NCBI RefSeq assembly: GCF_040938485.1
Contig: NW_027272185.1
Location: 434,001 to 498,000 of the forward strand
Length of the DNA stretch: 64,000 nt
DNA from: Diadema antillarum
Lineage: Eukaryota
Reading direction: 5' to 3'
Under the pieces are notes generated by a model. The model did not search any database and was not told the DNA's origin. It worked only from the letters and a program-made list of their open reading frames with translations. Positions 11,464 to 51,691 of this stretch are shown piece by piece; within the stretch, counting starts at the first letter, position 1; each line of letters starts with the position of its first letter. A program made the position numbers and the translations under genes.

Positions 11464-12760
11464 CTAGTTGTTGATAGTCACGTTACATCCGTGGAAGTGG
11501 AAAACGTTTCCACCGCTCTCCGAACGAACGTGACCGGTGTTCCTCCTGACCGTGATTGACGATCTCGACTGTGTACTAATAGTTTGGTTTTGGGTTAGAA
11601 CGCTGTTATCCTGCCGGATATCGCACTCATACTCGTCGCCCAGCTCCTGGTTCTTATTGTCCTTGTTGACATCCGAGTATACGCAAGTGGCCAACGATTC
11701 AGACATTTTTTCAGTTTCGTTTGGCTTGTTTTGGAATAGTGCTTCAGCGAATCTGCCGATTTGTGCCCGCTGACACTCTGGATATCGCGAGCCTCGTATC
11801 CACAGGCATCGAGAGTTGTGATGCTGGTTGCCCTTAGACAGTGATTGGTGTACGTTTGCTTGCATCCGGCCTTTTGTGACAGATTTTTCAGTTTGTTGCC
11901 AGTCGTGTTAATGCCTAATGGGGCATTGTCGAACCATGGGGTATCTTGTGCCAGCTCCTTCTTCGAAACATCTTTTGGCCTTTGCCACATCCAAGGGTTT
12001 TTGGGGTTCAACTTCGCTACATATTTCTCAAACGTGGCTACCGGACACCTGAAGTTTCACCCAGTTCAGGCATTTCAAACATCAAGCCAGCATCGGCTTC
12101 TCGGATGACATTTTCGCGGTTTTTTGTTAGAAAGTCTCTCATTTGCACGTATTTCCGTCCGGAATCATCTGCTTTGATGGTAAAGTCTTCAGCTTTCATC
12201 CCACGAATGTTCTCCCGTCCTCGATTACAGTAAAAGGTGAGAACGTCCAAGAAAACCTTATCCTGCAGGCCTCTGGGGGTGGAGAGGTCTAGTGACTCTT
12301 GTATCTTGCTCATGTCGTCTGACGAAATCACGGGTTTGTGTACAACGGATCCTTTACCTTCTTTCTTTGCCTTCACTTTCATCGCTTTGAAAACGCGGTT
12401 TGCTCGAGGAAACTTGCTGCTATCACCAATATCTATTCCATAGTTCTCAACAAAGTATCTCTGAACACCGAACCTAATGTTTTGTAGCGACCTTGTTTTG
12501 TATGATTCTCCATTGTCCTTCCTTATTCCAGAGTAGAATTTGGTCAAAAACTTGTCCAAATCTGTGGTATCCTTGGCGATTTCTTCCAAATCAGTTCCAG
12601 TGAATTTGACAAAGTCCATGAGTTTACTTTTAGCAAATTTCAATACCTTCTTTGTCCCTTTGCTGTCCATGTCATTTAACAGTCGGTCAATCTCTTCATC
12701 TGTCATAACTTGGAAGGAGATGGAAAAGTCCTCCTCCTTTGTTTGATTCACAGACGCCAT
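11464..12760 (-). pseudogene. Tyrosine recombinase (Crypton/DUF3504, KCTD1-ZMYM-QRICH1-like domain), two single-base frameshifts; about 432 aa when repaired
   Basis: Three ORF pieces join up: ...CNRGREN...TKNRE...GLMFEMP, then RCPVATFEKYVAKLNPK...NHCLRAT...SGHKSADSLKHYS, then KMSESLA...FHFHGCNVTINN. The R-K-HxxR-H-Y catalytic set is present. Frameshifts lie at about 12050-12060 and in the T6 run at 11706-11711. Confidence 0.88.
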
Positions 12761-13490
12761 ATCTAAAGGTTTCCGAATGAGTTGTGATTTCAAAACAGAG
12801 TGGACGCACAAAACAAGGCTGGCTACAGCGACGAAACTTAAGCCAATCAGTAATCTAGATCGTCGATCGTGAGATAGACTAGATCAAAGTCAGTAAAAAC
12901 GAGGAGCCATAAAAAAATCTTATTCCAGCAGGAGTTAATTTTTGATAGCACAAGTTTTAAATCCTATAAAATAACATGAGTGGTGGCCTTGAAACTATCT
13001 GGGTAAATGAAGAAATGTTATTCTTACTGAGTTTCCGCTGAAAAATCGTCGGTACGTCCCTGGCGATCGATGAATTTGTGTCATAAATTCAATTTCTTTT
13101 TCAACATGATCTGGTGGATCAGGACGATTTGAGTGTTGTGCCTGTGTACGGCAGACTGTCGTGGACCGGACACGAGTCAATTTTCGGTTAAACACAACAT
13201 TGAGTCTCTTTTTATATTACTAGTGCATGACTGAAATTAGTGTATGAAAAGTTCATTTTTCATTTTACGTGACCTCATTGAGCATAAGCTGGTACAAATC
13301 GAAATCTTGACTTTTGAGACACTGCGCATGCGCCAAAACCTTGAATTAGACAATTTGGGTGCGCGAAAATCCCACGGGCGTGCAGGGATAGAAACTTTTT
13401 CGCGAATGATCATGTGGTACGCTTTGACCAATCAGCAAGCTGGAAATTACTTAGCCATCTTATGATAGATCCTTTCATCATGGATGAACG

Positions 13491-14618
13491 CTACCTTGCC
13501 GTCTGCTCAAAGCTTGCTAGCTGCATGCATACTACACGTACGACTGTGTCCTCCCGTCTTGCGCGTTTGCGATAGAATGCTTTCTTCAGCGCCCGACGGT
13601 AACGGGCATTGGTGGCGCCGTAAATGTAGGGGTTGTTTGCAGAATTTATGTACATGAGAGTCTGAACGATGGGGAAAAAAGGATTGGCTTTGCGGCTGAA
13701 AGCGAAGTAAGTATCGTCACCGATCATCCCAGCAACCACGAGGGCGAGAATTACCACGTGGTATGGGAAGTACAGGAGGAAAAATAAAACACCTGTGATG
13801 ACGAGCATTCGTGTCACGGCGTTTCGCTCCTTGGTATAGCGATAGCGATCTGTGTGGAGGGCCGCTTCGGTCTTGATGCGAGCCGTCAGGCTCCGGATGA
13901 TGAGTGCGTAGAGGATCGAGTTGACGATCAGGGCAAGGAAAAACGGAATCAACTGGAGTGCATTAGCAATATCCACCCACGTGAGCGAAACGGCTTGACA
14001 TATGCCAAACAAAGTCGGAAAATCTTCGTAGGCAGGCTCGTCGGGGTATACTAGGCAGAAAAACATCACTTCGAAGTTTCCTGGAATGAGCAAAGCCGCG
14101 AACACACAGCTTAGGAGCCAGGTAGCGAAAACAACTCTCCTTGTTCTACCCCAGGTTGCGATCCGTCGATGCCAGAACGGTTTGCAAATCGCATAATACC
14201 GCTCGATCGTCACCGCAGTAATAAGCAGGACTGAGGCGTTGCATGCGAAGTCGACGACGAAGGAGATCGTTGAACACCCAGAACCTGTAGGCGTAGGATC
14301 GTTTCTCAGCGGCGATGAGTGAAAACGCCAGAGCTTCTCGCCTACACCGACTGTCAGGTAGATCAAGTCCGCCACAGCGAGGTTGACAAGGTAAAAGTTT
14401 GTGATTGTCCGTATGGACGGGACACGCGCCACGACGATAAGAAAGAGAATGTTACCGAAAAGGCCGACGGCCAGCACGCAAGGGAGCACGTAGCCTTTGA
14501 TGACCACTTCCACCTCATCCGGAAGGAGACTTTCGGCTTCCTCTTTCGATAGATTCACCATCATGTGTCCGTCTGCCAAACAGAGTTCATCGAGCTCTTG
14601 TGCCGTAGAGTACTCCAT
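13491..14618 (-). CDS. Class A (rhodopsin-like) GPCR, peptide-receptor-like, paralog A (375 aa)
   Basis: Seven hydrophobic segments with GLFGN (TM1), NLAVADL (TM2), ERY (TM3), W in TM4 and NPYIY (TM7). The CDS is intronless, with a likely splice acceptor (tttctcatcag) 8 nt upstream of the ATG. Confidence 0.95.
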   Translation of the reverse strand: MEYSTAQELDELCLADGHMMVNLSKEEAESLLPDEVEVVIKGYVLPCVLAVGLFGNILFLIVVARVPSIRTITNFYLVNLAVADLIYLTVGVGEKLWRFHSSPLRNDPTPTGSGCSTISFVVDFACNASVLLITAVTIERYYAICKPFWHRRIATWGRTRRVVFATWLLSCVFAALLIPGNFEVMFFCLVYPDEPAYEDFPTLFGICQAVSLTWVDIANALQLIPFFLALIVNSILYALIIRSLTARIKTEAALHTDRYRYTKERNAVTRMLVITGVLFFLLYFPYHVVILALVVAGMIGDDTYFAFSRKANPFFPIVQTLMYINSANNPYIYGATNARYRRALKKAFYRKRARREDTVVRVVCMQLASFEQTAR

Positions 14619-17940: not shown

Positions 17941-18515
17941 TGCATGTTTTTGCGCGTTTTGTCGACTTGAAACAGTCCCACTTGTTTAAGGTAGCAATAT
18001 ATTTTGATGTCGATTATTATTAAACAATTTGGCTATAAAAGGGTATCATAAACTTCTTGCATTAATTCTTACACTGATTATCATGAACGCGATTTAACCC
18101 AAGCGAGGGAGGGGGGGGGATGAGGGTGAGGGTGAGGATGCTGGACGGGGATGTTCCCCTCCTATATACCGGTGAGAACTGTTTGCATTGTGATGTTGTA
18201 AATGGTTGGGGGGGGGGGGGGGGGCGAGGGTGTGGGAGGGGTTGTTCCCGCTCCCACGGTGAGAACTTTTTGCATTTTAATGTTGTAAATGGTGCAATTT
18301 GATGCATGTTTTTGCGCGTTTTGTCGACTTGAAACGGTCCAAATTGTTTAAGGTAGCAATATATTCAAATGTCGATTATTATTAAACAATCTAGCTATAA
18401 AATTGCATCATAAATAAACTTCTTGTATTGATTCTTACACTGAATATCATGAACGCGACCTAACCCGAGCGAGGGAGGAGGGTGAGGGTGAGGGTGCCGG
18501 ACGGGGATGTTCCCC
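17941..18515 (+). repeat. Two diverged copies of a ~363-bp G-run-rich unit
   Basis: tgcatgtttttgcgcgttttgtcgacttgaaac occurs at 17941 and 18304, and each copy is followed by similar blocks. Confidence 0.8.
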
Positions 18516-18517
18516 CT

Positions 18518-19135
18518 GCAACTGCTGGCAATTACTGGCGGCAACATCAGGAGAATGGCATAACGATTAGATGCGAGCGAGCTTTAAAATTTTGACAGTT
18601 TGCAGTCCCAAAACTGCCATTTGTAGCTATATTTCTTCGCTTTGGAAATAAAGGGGGAGGGCGCACCGGGCGCAACTGCTGACAATTACTGGCAGCAACA
18701 TCAGAAGAATGGCATAACGAATAGATGCGAGCGAGCGGAGCGAGCGAGCTTGAAAATTGTGACATTTTACAGTCCCAAAATTGCCGTTTGTAGCTATATT
18801 TTTTCGCTTTGGAAAGTAAGAGGGGTCGCACCTGGCGCAACTGCTGGCAATTACTGGCAGCAACATCAGGAGAATGGCATAACGATTAGATGCGAGCGAG
18901 CGGAGCGAGCTTGAAAACTTTGACATTTTACAGTCCCCAAACTGCCGTTTGTAGCTATATTTTTCGCTTTATAAATAAAGGGGGCGCACCGGGCGCAACT
19001 GCTGACAATTACTGGCAGCAACATCAGGAAAATGGCATAGCGATTAGATGCGATCGAGCGAGCTTGAAAATTTTGACATTTTACAGTCCAAAAACTGCCG
19101 TTTGTAGCTATACTTTTTCGCTTTGGAAATTAAGA
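18518..19135 (+). repeat. Tandem array of four ~160-bp units
   Basis: gcaactgctg.caattactggc starts at 18518, 18672, 18837 and 18995 (periods 154, 165, 158). Confidence 0.9.
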
Positions 19136-20469
19136 GGGGGGGGGGTAGTCAAGGGTGTCGGTTTATGATTGTCATGTTTATGATTATGTCATGTTTATGT
19201 TCATGATTAGGGGAGGTATGACCTGAAACTGCAACTGGAAGTAGTAAATAAAATTAAGGCAGCCAATGTATTTATCGACATACATAAATACACATAAAAA
19301 CAGGTGCTGTTGATAATTCAAAAGTACAATTGTATACCCAATTAACTTAACAATACTTTAACACCCGTTGTTCAGAAAACATTCATTCTTGAATTCATTC
19401 TTCATTTTAATTCATTTAAATAGAGTTCCTTTTTTGGTACTTTTCAAGCCACAAGCATCAATATGGCATTATCTACAAGGAGAGGATGCAACCAAATGAC
19501 GGGTAAAATTATGTCACCATTCTTCATGAAATGCTTTTGGTAAGATTTGGCGCAAATTCAAGCAAAATCTCTGGGGTCGGGTTAACAATTGTCTGAAAAT
19601 AGGTTGATTTGATGTGGATTAACCCTAATTGATTGATTTTAATCAATACCTTGATATGTTTGAAGAAAAATCCCTACTTCTTAAATTCCCGCAGCAGTGC
19701 TTGAATACTGCCATATATTTTGCTGGGGTTTTTTATTACAAATTTCGCAAGTCGCGATGCATGAATGCCACTTCTGCAAAAAATCATGTACGCAAAAAAA
19801 TAGTGTTTACAGTATGGTTTCTTTCATAAGAGAGAAATCATACAAGTTTGCATGTTATTGTAGGCGTCATAAGGGTACATCCTTCAGAGCACATATTTAG
19901 CAGATATTTTTGAAATCTTGATTCTGTATGGATACGGAGGCCACACATAAATTTTCTTTACAAAATTCACAGCTTCAGATTGTGCATATTTCTTTCGGTT
20001 CTGAATTAATTTTTCTCAAATACTGTAAGCGCTGAAAGCAATCAGAATTCAATAAAAAGCATACATGCTGATAGTTCTCTTTGCTTGAAATTGCCAAATT
20101 TATTTAATTGTTATTCTAGAGTGCCCTCTATTCAACTATTGATCTTCCCCTTTAAAACAAAGCATGTTTTCCATCTGCATTAGGGAAGTTCAGACTATAG
20201 CTACATTAAGAACAATTGACGGTTGACCCAGCATTCAAGAATGATGTGATAAAGTCACCGCCATCTTCGCAACAAAGAGTGATGATGTGAGCTGTCAATT
20301 AACAGAGTAGGTCATGGATCATGATAATGGCTTCAGAGTTGTGCATTCATGTATGCATATGATCTTGTTGACATTTTAATTACCGGTATGTTTTTTTAAT
20401 TTTTTCAGCCTAAATTGTGTTTAGGCGCAGCCAACCAGGAACAGCATGACAGATAAGAGCCTAACTGTG

Positions 20470-25120: not shown

Positions 25121-25740
25121 TATACAAATGATGCACAGGATAGAGTGTGTTAGTGAAGGTGCGGCGCGCTCGAGAGTATTGACTACAATGGTGCGACATG
25201 CACGAGGCGCAGCCGAGTGCATGTTTGCAACCGTTGTCAATACTCGAGAGTGAGCCGCACCTTCACTACCGCCACGAAATAATCCTGTGCATCATTTGTT
25301 TTATAAAATGGGTCGAAAACTAACAGCATTATTCACGTACCTTTGTGGGTCAATACCAGTCAGCTACATGTAGCACTCGCTCAAAAGTCAAGATGTCTGA
25401 AGATGTTCGTCCCAAACATTTACGCACGTCGCACTCGGAAATCCCGCACATAAGTACTTAACTGTACGTACGTATAAGAGTACATACGTACGCCACGTGT
25501 TATGCACAAGAAAGGCCGCCGGCTGTTGTGGCAGCCCGAACTAGAAGTTGTTTACAGGATTGACAGCGCGTATAGTAGCGCGTGACGCACTTGTAACAAC
25601 TGATTGAGTGCGCACTGCTAGTGTAAACATTGTGACGTACGTCAGGCCCCGGCCGTGCATTTACTAAGAAATTAATGCACGCACACGTGACTCATTTCAG
25701 CGCTTCCAATTGGCTACATTCTTGAACCCATTTTATAAAA
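25121..25740 (+). mobile_element. Non-coding 0.62-kb element with the same hairpin + split-IR architecture as the YR element (putative non-autonomous Crypton-like)
   Basis: Absent in copy A (site 10767/10768). Perfect arms 25125-25141/25282-25298 (17 bp) and 25151-25165/25254-25268 (15 bp). IR 25299-25313/25726-25740 (15 bp). Apex GGC-GCA-GCC at 25206-25214. Confidence 0.8.
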
Positions 25741-26002
25741 CTTAGTTACACTGTACAGTGCCAGTGGTCGTGCTGGTACAGCATTCATGCCATGGCACAC
25801 GTTGAATTGAAAGTTTGACTTACACATTCATGGTTCAAACGTGTTTGTTTTTTCTTGTAAGCTTTAGATCGAGATCTACTTACCTTTCTTTTGGTTTTGA
25901 AGTGACAGGCGAACTGCCCTCTACTTGAACAGACAGGTGCAGAAACTGCAACTCTACTTTATAGATCCTTTCATCATGGATGAACGCTACCGTGCCGTCT
26001 GC

Positions 26003-27124
26003 TCAAAGCTTGCTAGCTAGCTGCATGCACACTACACGTACGACTGTGTCCTCCCGTCTTGCGCGTTTGCGATAGAATGTTTTCTTCAGCGCCCGACGGT
26101 AACGGGCATTGGTGGCGCCGTAAATGTAGGGGTTGTTTGCAGAATTTATGTACATGAGAGTCTGAAAGATGGGGACAAAAGGAATGACTTTGTTGCTGAA
26201 AGCGTAGTAAGTATCGTCACCGATCATCCCAGTAACCACGAGGGCGAGCGTTACCGCGTGGTATGGGGAGTACAGGAGGAAAAATAAAACACCTGTGATG
26301 ACGAGCATTCGTGTCACGGCGTTTCGCTCCTTGGTGTAGCGATAGCGATCTGTGTGGAGGGCCGCTTCGGTCTTGATGCGAGCCGTCAGGCTCCGGATGA
26401 TGAGTGCGTAGAGGATCGAGTTGACGATCAGGGCAAGGAAAAACGGAATCAACTGGAGCGCATTAGCAATATCCACCCACGTGGGCGAAACGGCTCGACA
26501 TCGGCCATACAAAGTAGGAAAATCTTCGTAGGCAGGCTCGTCGGGGTATACTAGGCAGTAAAACGTCATATCGGAGTGTCCTGGAATGAGCAAAGCCGCG
26601 AACACACAGCTTAGGAGCCAGGTAGCGAAAACAATTCTCCTTGTTCTACCCCAGGTTGCGATCCGTCGATGCCAGAACGGTTTGCAAATCGCATAATACC
26701 GCTCGATCGTCACCGCAGTAATAAGCAGGACTGAGGCGTTGTATGCGAAGTCGACGACGGAGGAGATCGTTGAACACCCAATAGAACCTTTATTAGGCGT
26801 ATGATCGTTTCCCAGCGGCGATGAGTGAAAACGCCAGAGCTTCTCGCCTACACCGACTGTCAGGTAGATCAAGTCCGCCACAGCGAGGTTGACAAGGTAA
26901 AAGTTTGTGATTGTCCGTATGGACGGGACACGCGCCACGACGATAAGAAAGAGAATGTTACCGAAAAGACCGACGGCCAGCACGCAAGGGAGCACGTAGG
27001 CTTTGATGACCACTTCCACTTCATCCGGAAGGAGACCTTCGGCTTGCTCTTTCGATAGATTCACCATCGTGTGTCCGTCTGCCAAACAGAGTTCATCGAG
27101 CTCTTGTGCCGTAGAGTACTCCAT
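26003..27124 (-). CDS. Class A GPCR, paralog B (373 aa)
   Basis: Same motifs as paralog A, about 31 substitutions and two one-codon indels. A 4-bp duplication (gcta, 26012-26019) shortens the C-terminal tail. Confidence 0.95.
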   Translation of the reverse strand: MEYSTAQELDELCLADGHTMVNLSKEQAEGLLPDEVEVVIKAYVLPCVLAVGLFGNILFLIVVARVPSIRTITNFYLVNLAVADLIYLTVGVGEKLWRFHSSPLGNDHTPNKGSIGCSTISSVVDFAYNASVLLITAVTIERYYAICKPFWHRRIATWGRTRRIVFATWLLSCVFAALLIPGHSDMTFYCLVYPDEPAYEDFPTLYGRCRAVSPTWVDIANALQLIPFFLALIVNSILYALIIRSLTARIKTEAALHTDRYRYTKERNAVTRMLVITGVLFFLLYSPYHAVTLALVVTGMIGDDTYYAFSNKVIPFVPIFQTLMYINSANNPYIYGATNARYRRALKKTFYRKRARREDTVVRVVCMQLASKL

Positions 27125-29312
27125 GATGGCAACTGATGAGGAGAAACGCTGTTTTTACGTCAACTATCAAAACAATACAGGAAACCTTGGTCAAAGAGCT
27201 TTTTGATTAGGACTCTCTTTACCCTTTCAAAAATACAAAGAGCAGCATTTTACTGTAATCTGTGGAATCTCCTGACGTAACACACACGCGCATGAAAACT
27301 ATCGGTTTCTTGTCGTGTCTTTCAAGAAGCTAGAGTAAAAATGCAGATTGACGGAAATATGAAACAGAGCTCAGTCATGGACGCACGATTCATTTTCTAA
27401 AAAACTCATTCTTATGTGGGTGGTACACTATCTACATAAACATTCAGCAAGCAAGGCAGTACGTGATGCTATGCTGGCGTCATCGTTCTAACGTCCAATT
27501 ACTGCACATCTCAGTCTGATTCGTTGTGTAGTTGATTTTGACCGCCGAAAGTTTTGACCGCCAAAAGTGATTCGATCCTATGCCGGAGCAACGAGACCAA
27601 TCGGGGTAGCAACGTTCTGCTCACGAATACGCAGCCAAGTGGGGGTATTTTGAGCTGGACTTGAGATTAAAGAAGTCGCTCTGACAGCGGTTGACATCGA
27701 TTTAGGATGACGTCACGGTGAGGGAAGCTATTGATGCAGCAAAGACTCGTCACCGCATTTCAGCAAGTTTGACAATGTCACTTCGTGGTGCGATGAATAG
27801 CAAACAGAGAAATCGGTTAATTGAGAAACGGAAACTACTGAAATATTCCACTCGGAGAGATTTAACAATAATTTCCTGTTATGCTGTTTCATCATGTAGG
27901 TCGATGTACCAGCCTCTCTCGAACTGGCCTATATACCTTCGCCGAACACACGCGCGCAGGTATTTATTGTACCAATTTACACAACTGCTCGCACACGCGC
28001 ACGCGCGAACACGCAGAAGGTCCTCTACATACAATATTATCTCGGTGTTTGTTTTTTTTTTAAGGAAAAACAAGAAACTTATATTGGCGGGAACGCGATT
28101 ACACGCGACAAATTTAACACCCATGCTTCTAGCAAAGTGAATTGATCGAATACTGGACAATAGCGGAAACGACACTATATATGAAGTCAATTAGAGAGAA
28201 GAAATATGATCTGACAAGGAGGAACTCTGCTTAGGTACATTGTTGATTGCTAAATGGCAATTGCTTGTCAAACTTCTTCTGTCCCCATACTCGCAAAACG
28301 ATAACCACACAAGTTTGATGTTCTCAGTAAAAGCGGCATATAGTCTGTTTAAAAGTGAGTTGTCTCTACTCGTTATTACACATATATTAACACGGTGAAA
28401 CTAAAAATAGGGGAGAAAACCTGATTGATGATATGCCACTAAGTTTATTGAAATGCATTGAAATGCATCGATTTAGTGGCAGTGCTGATACTGAAAAAAT
28501 GCTGCTAAACGAAGATCATTTTTGTCTATACCAACATAGCAACATTATGAATATACCTATGTATGTATATATATATATATATAATTTATATGAAATAGTA
28601 TTAGTTTTCTTCTATTCAAGTTTATCAGTCTTGTAATTGATGAAACATAATAATATGGTTTAATACGGTAACGTTTCAAAAGATCAAAGTAGAGTAAGAT
28701 ATGGGTGATGGAAGTTTCTTCTCTTTCTCTCCCTCTCTCTTTCTCCCACTATATCCGGAAAACGGAGGTGTGTTTTTACTATGCACATATCTTGCCCGAT
28801 GTGGGCAAAGCTATTAGTTACATACATTAAAGGATATGTTTACCTACGGTTTTCACTCAGCATTTTACTAATATGACCTTTTAGAAGAGGTTGAACGAAC
28901 CTTAGCGCTTGAAATGAAAAGCAGGGTTTGGACACAATGGCGATGACTTGTGTAAATCAATCCACAGGATGTATGGTTAGATATTTTCTTCATGATAGAT
29001 AGAAACTGATACTTATGATAAAAGGTCTATCCTGAGGTGGTAATATAGGATTACACCACCTTTTCAAATTAGTGTAAAAGGCGTGGATGAAAATATTAAC
29101 CGCTGATTACAGTAATAGTGTATCATTACATTTACCCCGCTATTAGCCTGTGATCTGCCATTCATTTTGATTTCATTTAATTATACTTCGTCCAATTCTA
29201 TTTACTTGTCAAAATAGTCTGTTTTCTCATTTCTTCCTGTGCCTATAAGATCGCTGTACCTTTTGAACTCCCTCTCCTTCCTCTCTCAAATCCATTATGG
29301 TCGTTTTATGTG

Positions 29313-49086: not shown

Positions 49087-50222
49087 AACTAGAAATAGCG
49101 ACTGGTATGCCTCCGCCATAATGCATGGTTCTCCTATTTTATAGTACAATGTTTTGACAATGTGTGATGACAGTTTCACATAATTGGCAAAATATTAAAA
49201 TGACAGATTTGTCACAAATGTGTTGAATGTTCACTTTCCTGAACTACTGTAGGTTTAATTGGATGAACAGCTAAAGAGTGCAGATATTTGGGAATTTAAG
49301 GATTTTTACTTGACTTTTAACCCTTTTATAAGTTTATGCATTGAGTGATTTTCAAGATATGGAGAAAAAGTGTCATTTCAGTATTAAATGGTAAAATAAT
49401 AGCATTTAGACCTGGCCTCTGACCCTTGACCTTTAACCTTATGACCCTAAAGTTCCCGAGAGAATCACTGTCAGGTAGAACATGCATAAATATGTACTAA
49501 GTGTCATGATGATACCCTACGTCACATTCGAGATATGGAGGAAGAAGGGAAATTTAGCATTTTCACTTGACCTTTGACCTTTTGGCAAGAAACTTCCGAG
49601 AGAATCTCTATTGATTAATACATGTATACATCTAGTTAAAAGAAAAATCCTGCAGGCATTGCATAAATATGAGGGAGGTAGTGACATTCTGAGGAATTGA
49701 ACTTGACCTTTGACCCCTGACCTGTGACCCATGACCCCCAAATTGTCCCTAGATAATCACTGCCAGTCAGTACATGCATATACACTAATTTCCATGAAGA
49801 TACCTTGAACCATTTTTTTGAGATATAATGGAGAAAAACGTGAAATTTCCCACATTTTTACGTGACCTTTGACCTCATGACCCGAAACTTATGTGGTAGT
49901 ACATGTATACACCAGGTTTCAAGAAAATATCTTTGGGCATTGCATGGATATGGGGGAAATAGTGAAATTTTGAGCATTTGACCTTGGCCTTTTGACCTTT
50001 GACCTTGAGCATGTGGCCCCCCCCCCCCAAAAAAAAAAAAGTTGCTAGGCACAACTTTGCCCACTCGTACATATACATGCCAAGTTCCATTAGGATACCT
50101 CAAACGGTTCTTTAGTTACGCTCTCCACAAATTGATTACGGACGGAAGGATGGACGGACAGATGGACAAACCAAAAACATAATGCCTCCGTCACTACTTC
50201 GTGCGCGGAGGCATAGAAAAAA
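49087..50222 (-). mobile_element. Second HINE, same family as 2848-3983, minus orientation
   Basis: ATGCCTCCGCC at 49107-49117 and CGGAGGCAT at 50206-50214, with a (GGAC)n tract at about 50139-50168. The body is colinear with the reverse complement of 2848-3983, and the 3' hairpin is partly deleted. Confidence 0.85.
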
Positions 50223-51691
50223 ACAAGAGACCCGGGGGTCACACGCTCACCTGAGTATCACAAGTTCACCTTCCATGCATTCTTGCAGACTCTTACCTGA
50301 GAACATTGGAAACTTATGGTGGGGGTAGCTTGAAGAGTGGGGGCATGGTGTCCATTTACATATTCCATCACACTGGTAAAAAATACCTACCAAGTACACT
50401 GTACTTTATAGAATGTTGGATTATGCATCTTGGGGGGGGGGGGGGGGGGGAAGACTTAAAGCCCTATCACTTTTGATTAGAACTAGAGAAAAACATTATT
50501 GAATATTCATTAATTTAGGAGGTTTGGACCCCCTGGGGCCCCAAGGGAAAGCATGGAGCCAACTTAGTGAAATCTTATCCCAATGGGAATGCCACTTGCC
50601 AAGTTTGGTGAAAACTCATTATGTTGTTTTCAGTAAGATGAAAATTTAGGCACGCATTTGGACCCCCCCCCCAAATCCCATCAAGCTTCCTTGAGTCCCA
50701 AGGGGGGTGGAAAGGGGGGGGGGGGGGGTAGAAAGGGCACCCCTGATTTTCCCATGAACAAACTTGAAACAACAGTCATCAATATACTGACTCATTGTAT
50801 CAACTTAGCTCAATCACTTCTGGTTCCGGAGAAAATCTGCAAAGATTCCTTACAGGAGGGGGGGGGGGGGGAACCCTTGGGGCCCCCAGGTGGAACATGG
50901 TGCCCATTTGATGGAATTGAGATTCTATCCCACTAGGGATGCTACCTGCCAATTTTGGTGAAAATTTGTGCTGGGTTTTTAAGAAAAAGATGAAAATTTA
51001 CAATTTCGGTCCAAATTTAGGCCCCCTGGGGCCCCCCAGGTGGGGCATGGTGCCCATTTGATGGAATTGAGATTCTATCCCCCTAGGGATGTTACCTGAC
51101 AAGTTTGGTGAAAATTTGTGATAGGGTTTTTAAGAAAAATATGAAAATTTACAATTTCGGTCCAAATTTAGGCCCCCTGGGGCCCCCCAGGTGGGGCATG
51201 GTGCCCATTTGATGAGAATGAGATTCTTTCCCCCTAGGGATGCTACCTGCCAACTTTGGTGAAAATTCATACTGGCATTTTCAAGAAAAAGATGAAAATG
51301 TACAATTTGGGCCCCATTAGGACCCCTCCCCACCCCCCCTCCCCTGGGTCCCAAGGGGGGCACCCCTGATTCCGCCATGAACAAACTTGAAACTGCAGTC
51401 ATCAATGTACTAATTCATAGTATTAACTTGGCTCTATCACTTCTGGTTCTAGAGAAGAAGATTTTTTAAGATTCCTTCATTTTGGGGGGTTTGGGCCCCT
51501 CTAGGGGCCCCCAGGTGGGGTATGGTGCCCACTTGAACAAATTGAGATCCTATCCCCCTAGGGATGCTACCTGCCAAGTTTGGTGAAAATCGGTCAAGGG
51601 GTTCTCAAGAAGAAGATGAAAATGTAAAAAGTTTACGCACGACGCACGCCGGACACCGCACGCCGGACGCCGGACGAAGAGCGATCGCAAT

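Follow-up and report, generated by a model that had tools for sequence, protein, structure and literature searches.

Cryptons are DNA transposons with a gene for a tyrosine recombinase (YR). They are generally present in low copy number, and a short direct repeat is given as their sole distinguishing feature (curation guide, PMC8969392). In animal Cryptons no terminal repeats have been found, and the 4-6 bp terminal direct repeats of the fungal model were likewise not found there, so that such repeats do not define the group in animals (Kojima & Jurka, PMC3212892). YRs that act on folded or single strands have precedents in CTXphi, in the attC sites of integrons and in SE elements with a strand bias (PMC9345347, with its references 16 and 17). 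Here, we analyze a stretch of 64,000 nucleotides of the Diadema antillarum genome (assembly GCF_040938485.1, contig NW_027272185.1, positions 434,001 to 498,000, forward strand), which we call the window and whose own numbering is used below. It contains a non-coding element of 618 bp that we term N618. We show that N618 is a real, abundant and young mobile element. Judged by its ends and its layout, it is very probably a very young, high-copy, non-coding derivative of CryptonA-type YR transposons. We tentatively propose that it moves as a folded single strand, in which a hairpin and a splint form the recombination site. Taken together, this identity and this mechanism are likely to be the best overall explanation of the element. 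We found no description of a hairpin-plus-splint layout of Cryptons in the open-access literature that was searched.

The window carries two paralogous segments, copy A and copy B. N618 lies in copy B, and copy A holds the corresponding empty site (Table 1). Compared with copy A the insertion is exact, with target bases neither duplicated nor lost. Genome-wide, a search of the 1.75-Gb assembly gave 2,158 first-look candidates, 40 of which were scored, and all 40 span positions 1-618 of the element at 97-98% identity. The 28-mer at the left end of N618 has 3,478 genome matches at two mismatches or fewer, and the same 28-mer read backwards has none. We aligned 25 copies with independent flanks; these are the best-scoring ones and the sample is therefore biased to the youngest. 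Their consensus is 608 bp long, and they differ from it by 0.16-1.0% substitutions. In the window copy we counted two substitutions and three small insertions, the latter making it 10 bp longer than the consensus. All 25 copies start with TATACAAATG and nearly all end with CCCATTTTATAA. Neither target site duplications (TSDs) nor terminal inverted repeats (TIRs) were seen at the 25 unique insertion sites. The scan of N618 for open reading frames (ORFs) found none longer than 47 amino acids, and the Rfam scan gave no match.

The sequence-only reading had described this element as a non-coding, non-autonomous unit built from TATA, a 174-bp hairpin, a junction motif and an arm complementary to the right end. 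All of these parts were read in the sequence and by a repeat finder, and the same blueprint is present in the YR element of copy A. The doubts that it had raised itself, namely that copies might have the TIR and TSD ends of a DDE transposon or that hairpin and arm might be separate neighbors, are answered by the 25 insertion sites and by the 40 best matches, each of which is one unit. Two details had to be corrected. The right end had been placed at 25740, but the element stops at 25738; the A's at 25739 and 25740 are target bases that happen to extend the inverted repeat. The junction had been taken as uncertain by 1-2 bp, and it is now fixed by 25 copies with consistent ends and by the clean empty site in copy A.

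Table 1. Features of N618 and of the related sites in the window (a caret marks an insertion point, here and in the text).
Feature	Position	Strand	Basis or remark
N618, whole non-autonomous element	25121..25738	+	618 bp; bounds from 25 unique copies and the paralogous empty site
5' terminal TATA	25121..25124	+	present in six families with mapped ends; T1-T3 unpaired in the DNA fold
Imperfect hairpin, arms A and A'	25125..25298	+	174 nt; inverted repeats, fold z = -11.9, covariation
Perfect hairpin arms	25124..25141 / 25282..25299		18 nt
Apex CGA-GGC-GCA-GCC-GAG	25203..25217	+	GNA triloop, C:G closed, flanked by a tandem G.A pair
TT spacer between A' and B	25299..25300	+	TT in 6/6 families with mapped ends; the joined ends carry TATA there
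B arm (splint half) TTATAAAATGGGT	25301..25313	+	complementary to the 3' terminus
Non-coding body	25314..25725	+	CACGTG 25684-25689; CCAAT 25706-25710
B' arm and 3' terminus ACCCATTTTATAA	25726..25738	+	conserved 3' motif A.CC.T.TATAA
Empty target site for N618	10767..10768	.	copy A, gtaatgt^aacttag; BLAST of copy A against copy B and direct reading
YR element in copy A (decayed CryptonA-type, N618-like blueprint)	10990..13465	+	ORF on the minus strand; ends mapped on about 15 insertion sites

The hairpin has inner arms of 36 nt with 86% complementarity, and the motif directly 3' of it is TTTTATAA. In the predicted DNA fold the 5' TATA is largely an unpaired flap. The minimum-energy folds of both strands contain the hairpin and a closing helix B:B', in which the B arm pairs with positions 606-618.

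The probable identity of N618 is indicated by its relatives. The YR element in copy A, below called the window Crypton, has a frameshifted ORF with matches to QRICH1/DUF3504-like and Phage_integrase families. From its genomic copies the ends TATAGGAATAACGC...GCCATCTTATAA could be defined, and short deletion derivatives exist for it as well. A protein probe from a more intact copy (L032) gave at least 130 genomic YR matches at 35-54% identity, many of them open, and six of these places were read. Together with the element in the window this makes seven autonomous elements of 2.05-3.1 kb, each with a single YR ORF and without a reverse transcriptase (RT). The L067 element is 2,051 bp long and has one intact ORF of 450 amino acids, which matches the Pfam families DUF3504 (42.5 bits, cut-off 29.7, E 9e-11) and Phage_integrase (28.0 bits, cut-off 27.1, E 2e-6). 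Since both domains score above the Pfam thresholds, we assign the relatives to the CryptonA-type YR-only DNA transposons, an assignment that the sequence motifs HCLRAT and GH..SL..Y support, in which the catalytic R-H-R-Y of YRs is legible. The YR ORF is always on the strand opposite to the hairpin plus strand and points to the hairpin. Three open Crypton YR frames of 529 amino acids, 2,592 bp apart on one strand, were found at G000:C104:750682-756577 and apparently represent a head-to-tail tandem array of a whole autonomous Crypton. Two extra hairpins with CGAG...GNA...CGAG-type apices lie just outside (L069:5775-5899) and inside (L069:4401-4501) the 3.1-kb L069 Crypton, which points to similar elements that are nested or adjacent there.

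The layout of N618 recurs in all autonomous families sampled: TATA, a hairpin of 133-174 nt, TT, an arm complementary to the 3' end, CCAAT and TATAA (Table 2). The L068 element falls in the L070 family, and L071, outside the set with mapped ends, has a 168-nt hairpin followed by the motif TTTATA. Across the six families with mapped ends the distance of CCAAT from the 3' end is 33-40 nt, and in each of them the inner segment A'-TT-B is the reverse complement of the joined ends, with TT replacing TATA. With about 3,480 genomic left ends and six other families this blueprint is far beyond chance and is a property of the clade. Alignment of seven families, N618 included, gave the conserved 5' motif TATACAAAT(A/G)A, (C/T)GA(G/A) motifs at three heights of each hairpin arm and the conserved apex CGAnGCGnAGCnGAG. 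The splint motif ATTTG-TT-TTATA is conserved across families too, and the alignment of the 3' ends shows the common terminus, with CCAAT about 38 nt away from it.

Table 2. Common layout of N618 and autonomous Crypton families with mapped ends. The B arm is the ungapped length at 80% identity or more; CCAAT is the distance from its start to the 3' end.
Family	5' start	Hairpin (nt)	Spacer	B arm (nt)	3' end	CCAAT (nt)
N618	TATA	174	TT	21 (13 perfect)	TATAA	33
Window Crypton (CryA, L032 copy)	TATA	174	TT	33 (23 perfect)	TATAA	38
L067	TATA	163	TT	11	TATAA	38
L069	TATA	133	TT	40	TATAA	38
L070	TATA	163	TT	12	TATAA	40
L072	TATA	163	TT	64	TATAA	38

The closest autonomous relative in our sample is the L067 family. 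It has in common with N618 the first 19 of 19 nt, a 19-nt apex and 11 of the last 13 nt, and the two differences at the 3' end are compensated by complementary differences in the B arm. N618 and the L070 family share CCATTTTATAA^TATACAAAT across the joined ends. A sensitive blastn of N618 against the six autonomous families found matches at the termini and the apex only. Because similarity is not detectable beyond these parts, the true parent of N618 is not among the six families sampled. A YR element that matches N618 would be expected to carry TATACAAATGATGCACAGGAT downstream of its ORF and GAACCCATTTTATAA upstream, and a tblastn search with YR found no YR beside any of the N618-type copies retrieved. 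Since N618 has kept only cis-acting parts it must be moved in trans, most likely, as its termini suggest, by the recombinase of a related autonomous Crypton.

These data bear on how the blueprint had been interpreted before. The sequence-only reading had suspected a family property behind it, and indeed the layout is seen in 7/7 families examined, with covarying stems and with CCAAT near the right end of both window elements, as it had noted. It had also called N618 unrelated to the YR element and suggested that partners are recognized by shape. Neither idea holds in this form, since N618 shares terminal, apex and splint motifs with the YR families and conserved sequence motifs accompany the shape. 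Of the genome-wide comparison that it had proposed, ends and target motif are now defined, but a YR element with exactly the arms of N618 did not turn up among the 6 of at least 130 YR places read.

Pairing within the hairpin is maintained although the sequence of the arms changes. RNAalifold predicts 62 pairs for the seven hairpins, and 54 of them are kept through two-sided changes in at least one family. Complementarity of an arm to its own partner is 0.72-0.87 (mean 0.80), compared with 0.48-0.64 (mean 0.56) across families. The 25 aligned young copies share the same hairpin mismatches, which also appear in both counts of the 28-mer. As identical mismatches persist, the two arms are inherited independently and are not copied from each other; with independent inheritance the covariation reflects selection, and we conclude from these alignments that hairpin pairing is under selection. 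The mismatches are also distributed unequally between the strands. On the plus strand the seven families have 37 G.A against 4 T.C mismatches and 19 G.T against 7 A.C, and the G.A mismatches are mostly tandem GA/GA pairs at three conserved heights. The plus strand, which is antisense to the YR ORF, forms a GNA triloop closed by C:G in 7/7 families. The apex columns are invariant in the alignment of the seven families, and the 19 apex nucleotides are identical in L067. The GCGNAGC motif is an extraordinarily stable DNA mini-hairpin (PMC13037366, PMC3201870).

If the hairpin primed its own copying, or if it were frequently inverted, young copies should be found in both orientations. The predicted left end of the inverted ("flop") form has 17 exact and 9 one-mismatch matches in the genome, compared with 3,478 for the resident ("flip") form. 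Six flop loci were read, and these belong to a diverged subfamily (79-85%) or are rearranged; none is young. We therefore reject ongoing flip-flop, be it by a rolling hairpin or by frequent inversion between junction and inner site. The older subfamily (L061:1501-2101 and L063:1501-2340, 79-85% identical to N618) has a near-perfect hairpin in which apex and mid-stem are inverted, so that its plus strand carries T.C mismatches and a TTC loop. Inversion has therefore occurred in the history of the family, but outside the normal cycle.

The insertion sites have a common target motif. In the 25 flanks of N618 we found T at -3 (15/25), A at -2 (19/25), G or T at -1 (18/25), T at +1 (14/25), A at +2 (14/25), T at +3 (16/25) and T at +8 (22/25, p ~5e-9 against a background of 31%). 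Targets of the window Crypton family have T at -3 and A at -2 (11/15 each), G or T at -1 (12/15) and T at +8 (11/13). Both therefore share TA(G/T)^TA... with T at +8. With TAT at +1 to +3 in just 3 of the 25 right flanks, we rejected a 3-bp TAT duplication or a homologous core. Position -1 is seldom the A that ends the element. The junctions are exact even though the targets have no homologous core. At 3 of the 25 unique loci N618 forms head-to-tail dimers, joined as ...TTATAA^TATACAAATG..., with the general form TTATAA^(T)ATACAAATG; in one of them the second copy starts with ATACAAATG, and in another a young copy adjoins an older copy of 89% identity. Judged by these dimers existing 3' ends are preferred targets, as expected of site-specific recombination at element ends. 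A solo, internally deleted hairpin of about 70 bp, with TATA on both sides, lies at L064:1501-1571 beside a truncated copy, with the flank ATACTATAC repeated, and looks like a local rearrangement at an element end.

To our knowledge, the mechanism of Crypton transposition has never been shown. We propose that the plus strand, with its G.A pairs and its GNA loop, would fold first. The hairpin A:A' and the helix B:B' would then stack on the continuous segment A'-TT-B, which would act as the splint. In this arrangement the 3' end ...TTATAA and the 5' end TATA-C... would abut in a duplex-like site with a TAT/T bubble. The YR could swap the folded strand with a double-stranded TA(G/T)^TA....T target, and during the swap the 5' TAT of N618 could pair with the complement of the TAT that is preferred at +1 to +3 of the target. 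Replication would complete the insertion. A single-strand route of this kind would give exact junctions, no TSD and copy-out amplification to thousands of copies, a number that simple excision and reintegration would not readily give. More generally, animal CryptonA-type elements could transpose by one-strand copy-out from a self-assembled site, with N618 as a minimal natural substrate; for this broader proposition our confidence is slightly lower than for the folded strand of N618.

Several points weigh against this proposal. The mechanism is deduced entirely from sequence. The joined ends are not complemented exactly by the inner segment, which has TT where they have TATA, and no autonomous element with exactly the arms of N618 was among the 6 of at least 130 YR places read. 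Nearest-neighbor DNA folds of the two strands are close to equal (-126.6 and -129.2 kcal/mol) in a model that gives no credit to G.A and GNA motifs. As both strands fold about equally well, strand specificity has to be read from the types of mismatch. The mismatch counts come from seven related families, so they are not independent and the p-values make the case look stronger than it is. The (C/T)GA(G/A) motifs, all in the same orientation, could be protein-binding sites in duplex DNA. Finally, the inverted core of L061 and L063 may mean that the orientation is not strictly essential.

In the main rival the same non-autonomous Crypton moves as double-stranded DNA and the palindrome is an array of sites for the recombinase or an accessory protein. 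The CGAG-type motifs would act like arm-type sites, A'-TT-B would be a second, inverted core site that serves synapsis, dimer resolution or inversion, and excision would yield a double-stranded circle that integrates at look-alike sites. Such a circle is the classical Crypton model (Goodwin et al., summarised in PMC3212892), and integration of a circle at a resident end fits the head-to-tail dimers. The six (C/T)GA(G/A) motifs of each hairpin follow one another in the same orientation at intervals of about 30 nt, which would suit binding sites, and the energy model is without strand preference. However, pairing has no role in a plain duplex, and the stems turn over with pairing kept at 54/62 positions. 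There are 19 G.T against 7 A.C mismatches, and the mini-hairpin at the apex is a textbook case for single strands (PMC13037366). Exact junctions where the target offers no homologous core are awkward to reconcile with an exchange of two strands over a 6-8-bp overlap. Recombination between inverted sites would give an inverted hairpin core such as that of the diverged subfamily, but ongoing inversion is absent, with no more than 26 flop ends to 3,478 flip ends, and no young copy among the six flop loci sampled. We regard movement as a duplex as less likely than the folded single strand, but as a substantial alternative to it.

A retro-mechanism as in DIRS elements would have N618 transcribed and copied by an RT in trans, with the inner segment bridging the cDNA ends. 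An inner segment complementary to both termini is formally the device of the internal complementary region of DIRS elements (PMC13465315), but the seven autonomous relatives, 2.05-3.1 kb in size, encode YR and no RT. In addition, the inverted arms are adjacent at one end, away from an arrangement at the two termini, and neither poly-A nor a primer-binding site nor a pattern of 5' truncation was seen among N618 copies. This makes a DIRS-like cycle very improbable. A still smaller chance is left for a single-strand transposon of the HUH type (Helitron, Replitron or IS200/IS605-like) whose likeness to Crypton ends is a coincidence. HUH elements, too, are without TSD, reach high copy numbers and have a short target motif and a subterminal hairpin (PMC8969392, PMC10288648), but the same ends as in N618 bracket YR-only ORFs in seven families, and no Rep-like ORF was seen between such ends. 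The termini are TATA...TATAA, compared with TC...CTRR, and with flanks of TA(G/T)^TA the insertion is not between A and T. The Helitron reading and that of a DDE-type miniature inverted-repeat transposable element (MITE) were both rejected on the ends and flanks of N618. A 180-bp palindromic and a separate 430-bp element side by side, or a DDE-type MITE, hardly deserve credence. One rearranged locus with a solo shortened hairpin and TATA on both sides (L064) speaks for a composite, but the best matches are contiguous over positions 1-618 in 40/40 cases, which led us to reject two adjacent elements. Moreover, the B arm, a neighbor of the hairpin, has its pairing partner at the opposite end of the unit, and TIR and TSD are missing at 25 sites.

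The surroundings of the two window elements are similar. Tandem paralogous genes for rhodopsin-family G protein-coupled receptors (GPCRs) lie at 13491-14618 (minus strand) and at about 25960-27190. The window Crypton ends 26 bp past the stop codon of one paralogue. Next to the other paralogue, N618 is about 220-250 bp away from the homologous point, so that both insertions are in the 3' flank of the GPCR genes. The homologous distance between the two insertion points, estimated earlier at about 220 bp, is 222 bp, and this closeness is better explained by a shared target preference than by an interaction of the elements. In copy A the sequence to the left of the window Crypton is aactctac-atctgttag (10980-10989), compared with aactctac-ttta in the uninterrupted copy B (25948-25951). 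Unlike that of N618, its empty site is thus not a clean match, which could be due to filler DNA, a footprint or divergence. Copy A alone also contains a 7.1-kb insertion (2853-9931) that holds a Gypsy-type long terminal repeat retrotransposon, with ORFs at 5372-8623 and 8629-9390 that match gag, RT, RNase H and integrase families. A dispersed inverted repeat of about 0.9 kb (2863-3756 and 49316-50203, 82-92% identity) lies at the edge of this insertion. Two short satellite-like arrays are found at 18505-19139 and 50561-51616, with units of about 160 bp and about 150 bp.

N618 is a compact, recently active substrate with thousands of copies, and it delimits the cis requirements of the recombinase: at the 5' end about 193 nt, and at the 3' end a short stretch that bears CCAAT. 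It supplies the target motif and makes strand-specific folding with splinted ends directly testable. The layout lets annotators recognize non-autonomous Cryptons without a coding signal, and provides a structural bridge from Cryptons to DIRS retrotransposons. If the proposed mechanism is true, CTXphi and integron-cassette recombination would have a counterpart in eukaryotes, possibly one from which the internal complementary region of DIRS elements descends.

Non-autonomous Cryptons have been described before. CryptonI-1N1_RPro and CryptonA-1N1/1N2_OL, like N618, are gene-less, have neither TIR nor TSD and are far more abundant than the autonomous copies; both their termini are those of YR-only Cryptons (PMC3212892). 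N618 shares with the autonomous families sampled here only the termini and the apex, and no long flanking stretches. It differs from described animal Cryptons in its long hairpin with covarying stems and in the inner segment that complements both ends. Its roughly 3,500 copies at less than 1% divergence are unusual compared with low-copy Cryptons (PMC8969392). The terminal direct repeat of 4-6 bp that the fungal Crypton model shares with the target has no equivalent here, as the TATA of N618 is absent from the targets. For the GCGNAGC mini-hairpin, what is known is physico-chemical and comes from phage origins and synthetic DNA (PMC13037366; d(GCA) loop, PMC3201870). In the literature searched we found no description of it at the tip of a transposon hairpin. 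The apex of N618, GGC-GCA-GCC, is a GNA loop closed by C:G, and the other families have GAA or GGA. DIRS1-type elements, like N618, have an internal inverted complement of the joined termini, depend on a YR and leave no TSD. However, N618 and its relatives have no RT, RNase H or methyltransferase, their arms are adjacent in a hairpin at one end, and the splint abuts this hairpin. The proposed folded form of N618 would resemble CTXphi attP(+), attC and SE-6945/SE-6283, which use an imperfect hairpin of one strand with unpaired central bases as the substrate (PMC9345347). In these bacterial systems a YR exchanges single strands, replication resolves the product and copy-out leaves no empty donor site (PMC9345347). 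They use enzymes of the Xer/IntI type with defined partner sites and experimental proof, whereas for N618, in an animal genome and presumably served by a YR of the DUF3504 type, the analogy is drawn from sequence.

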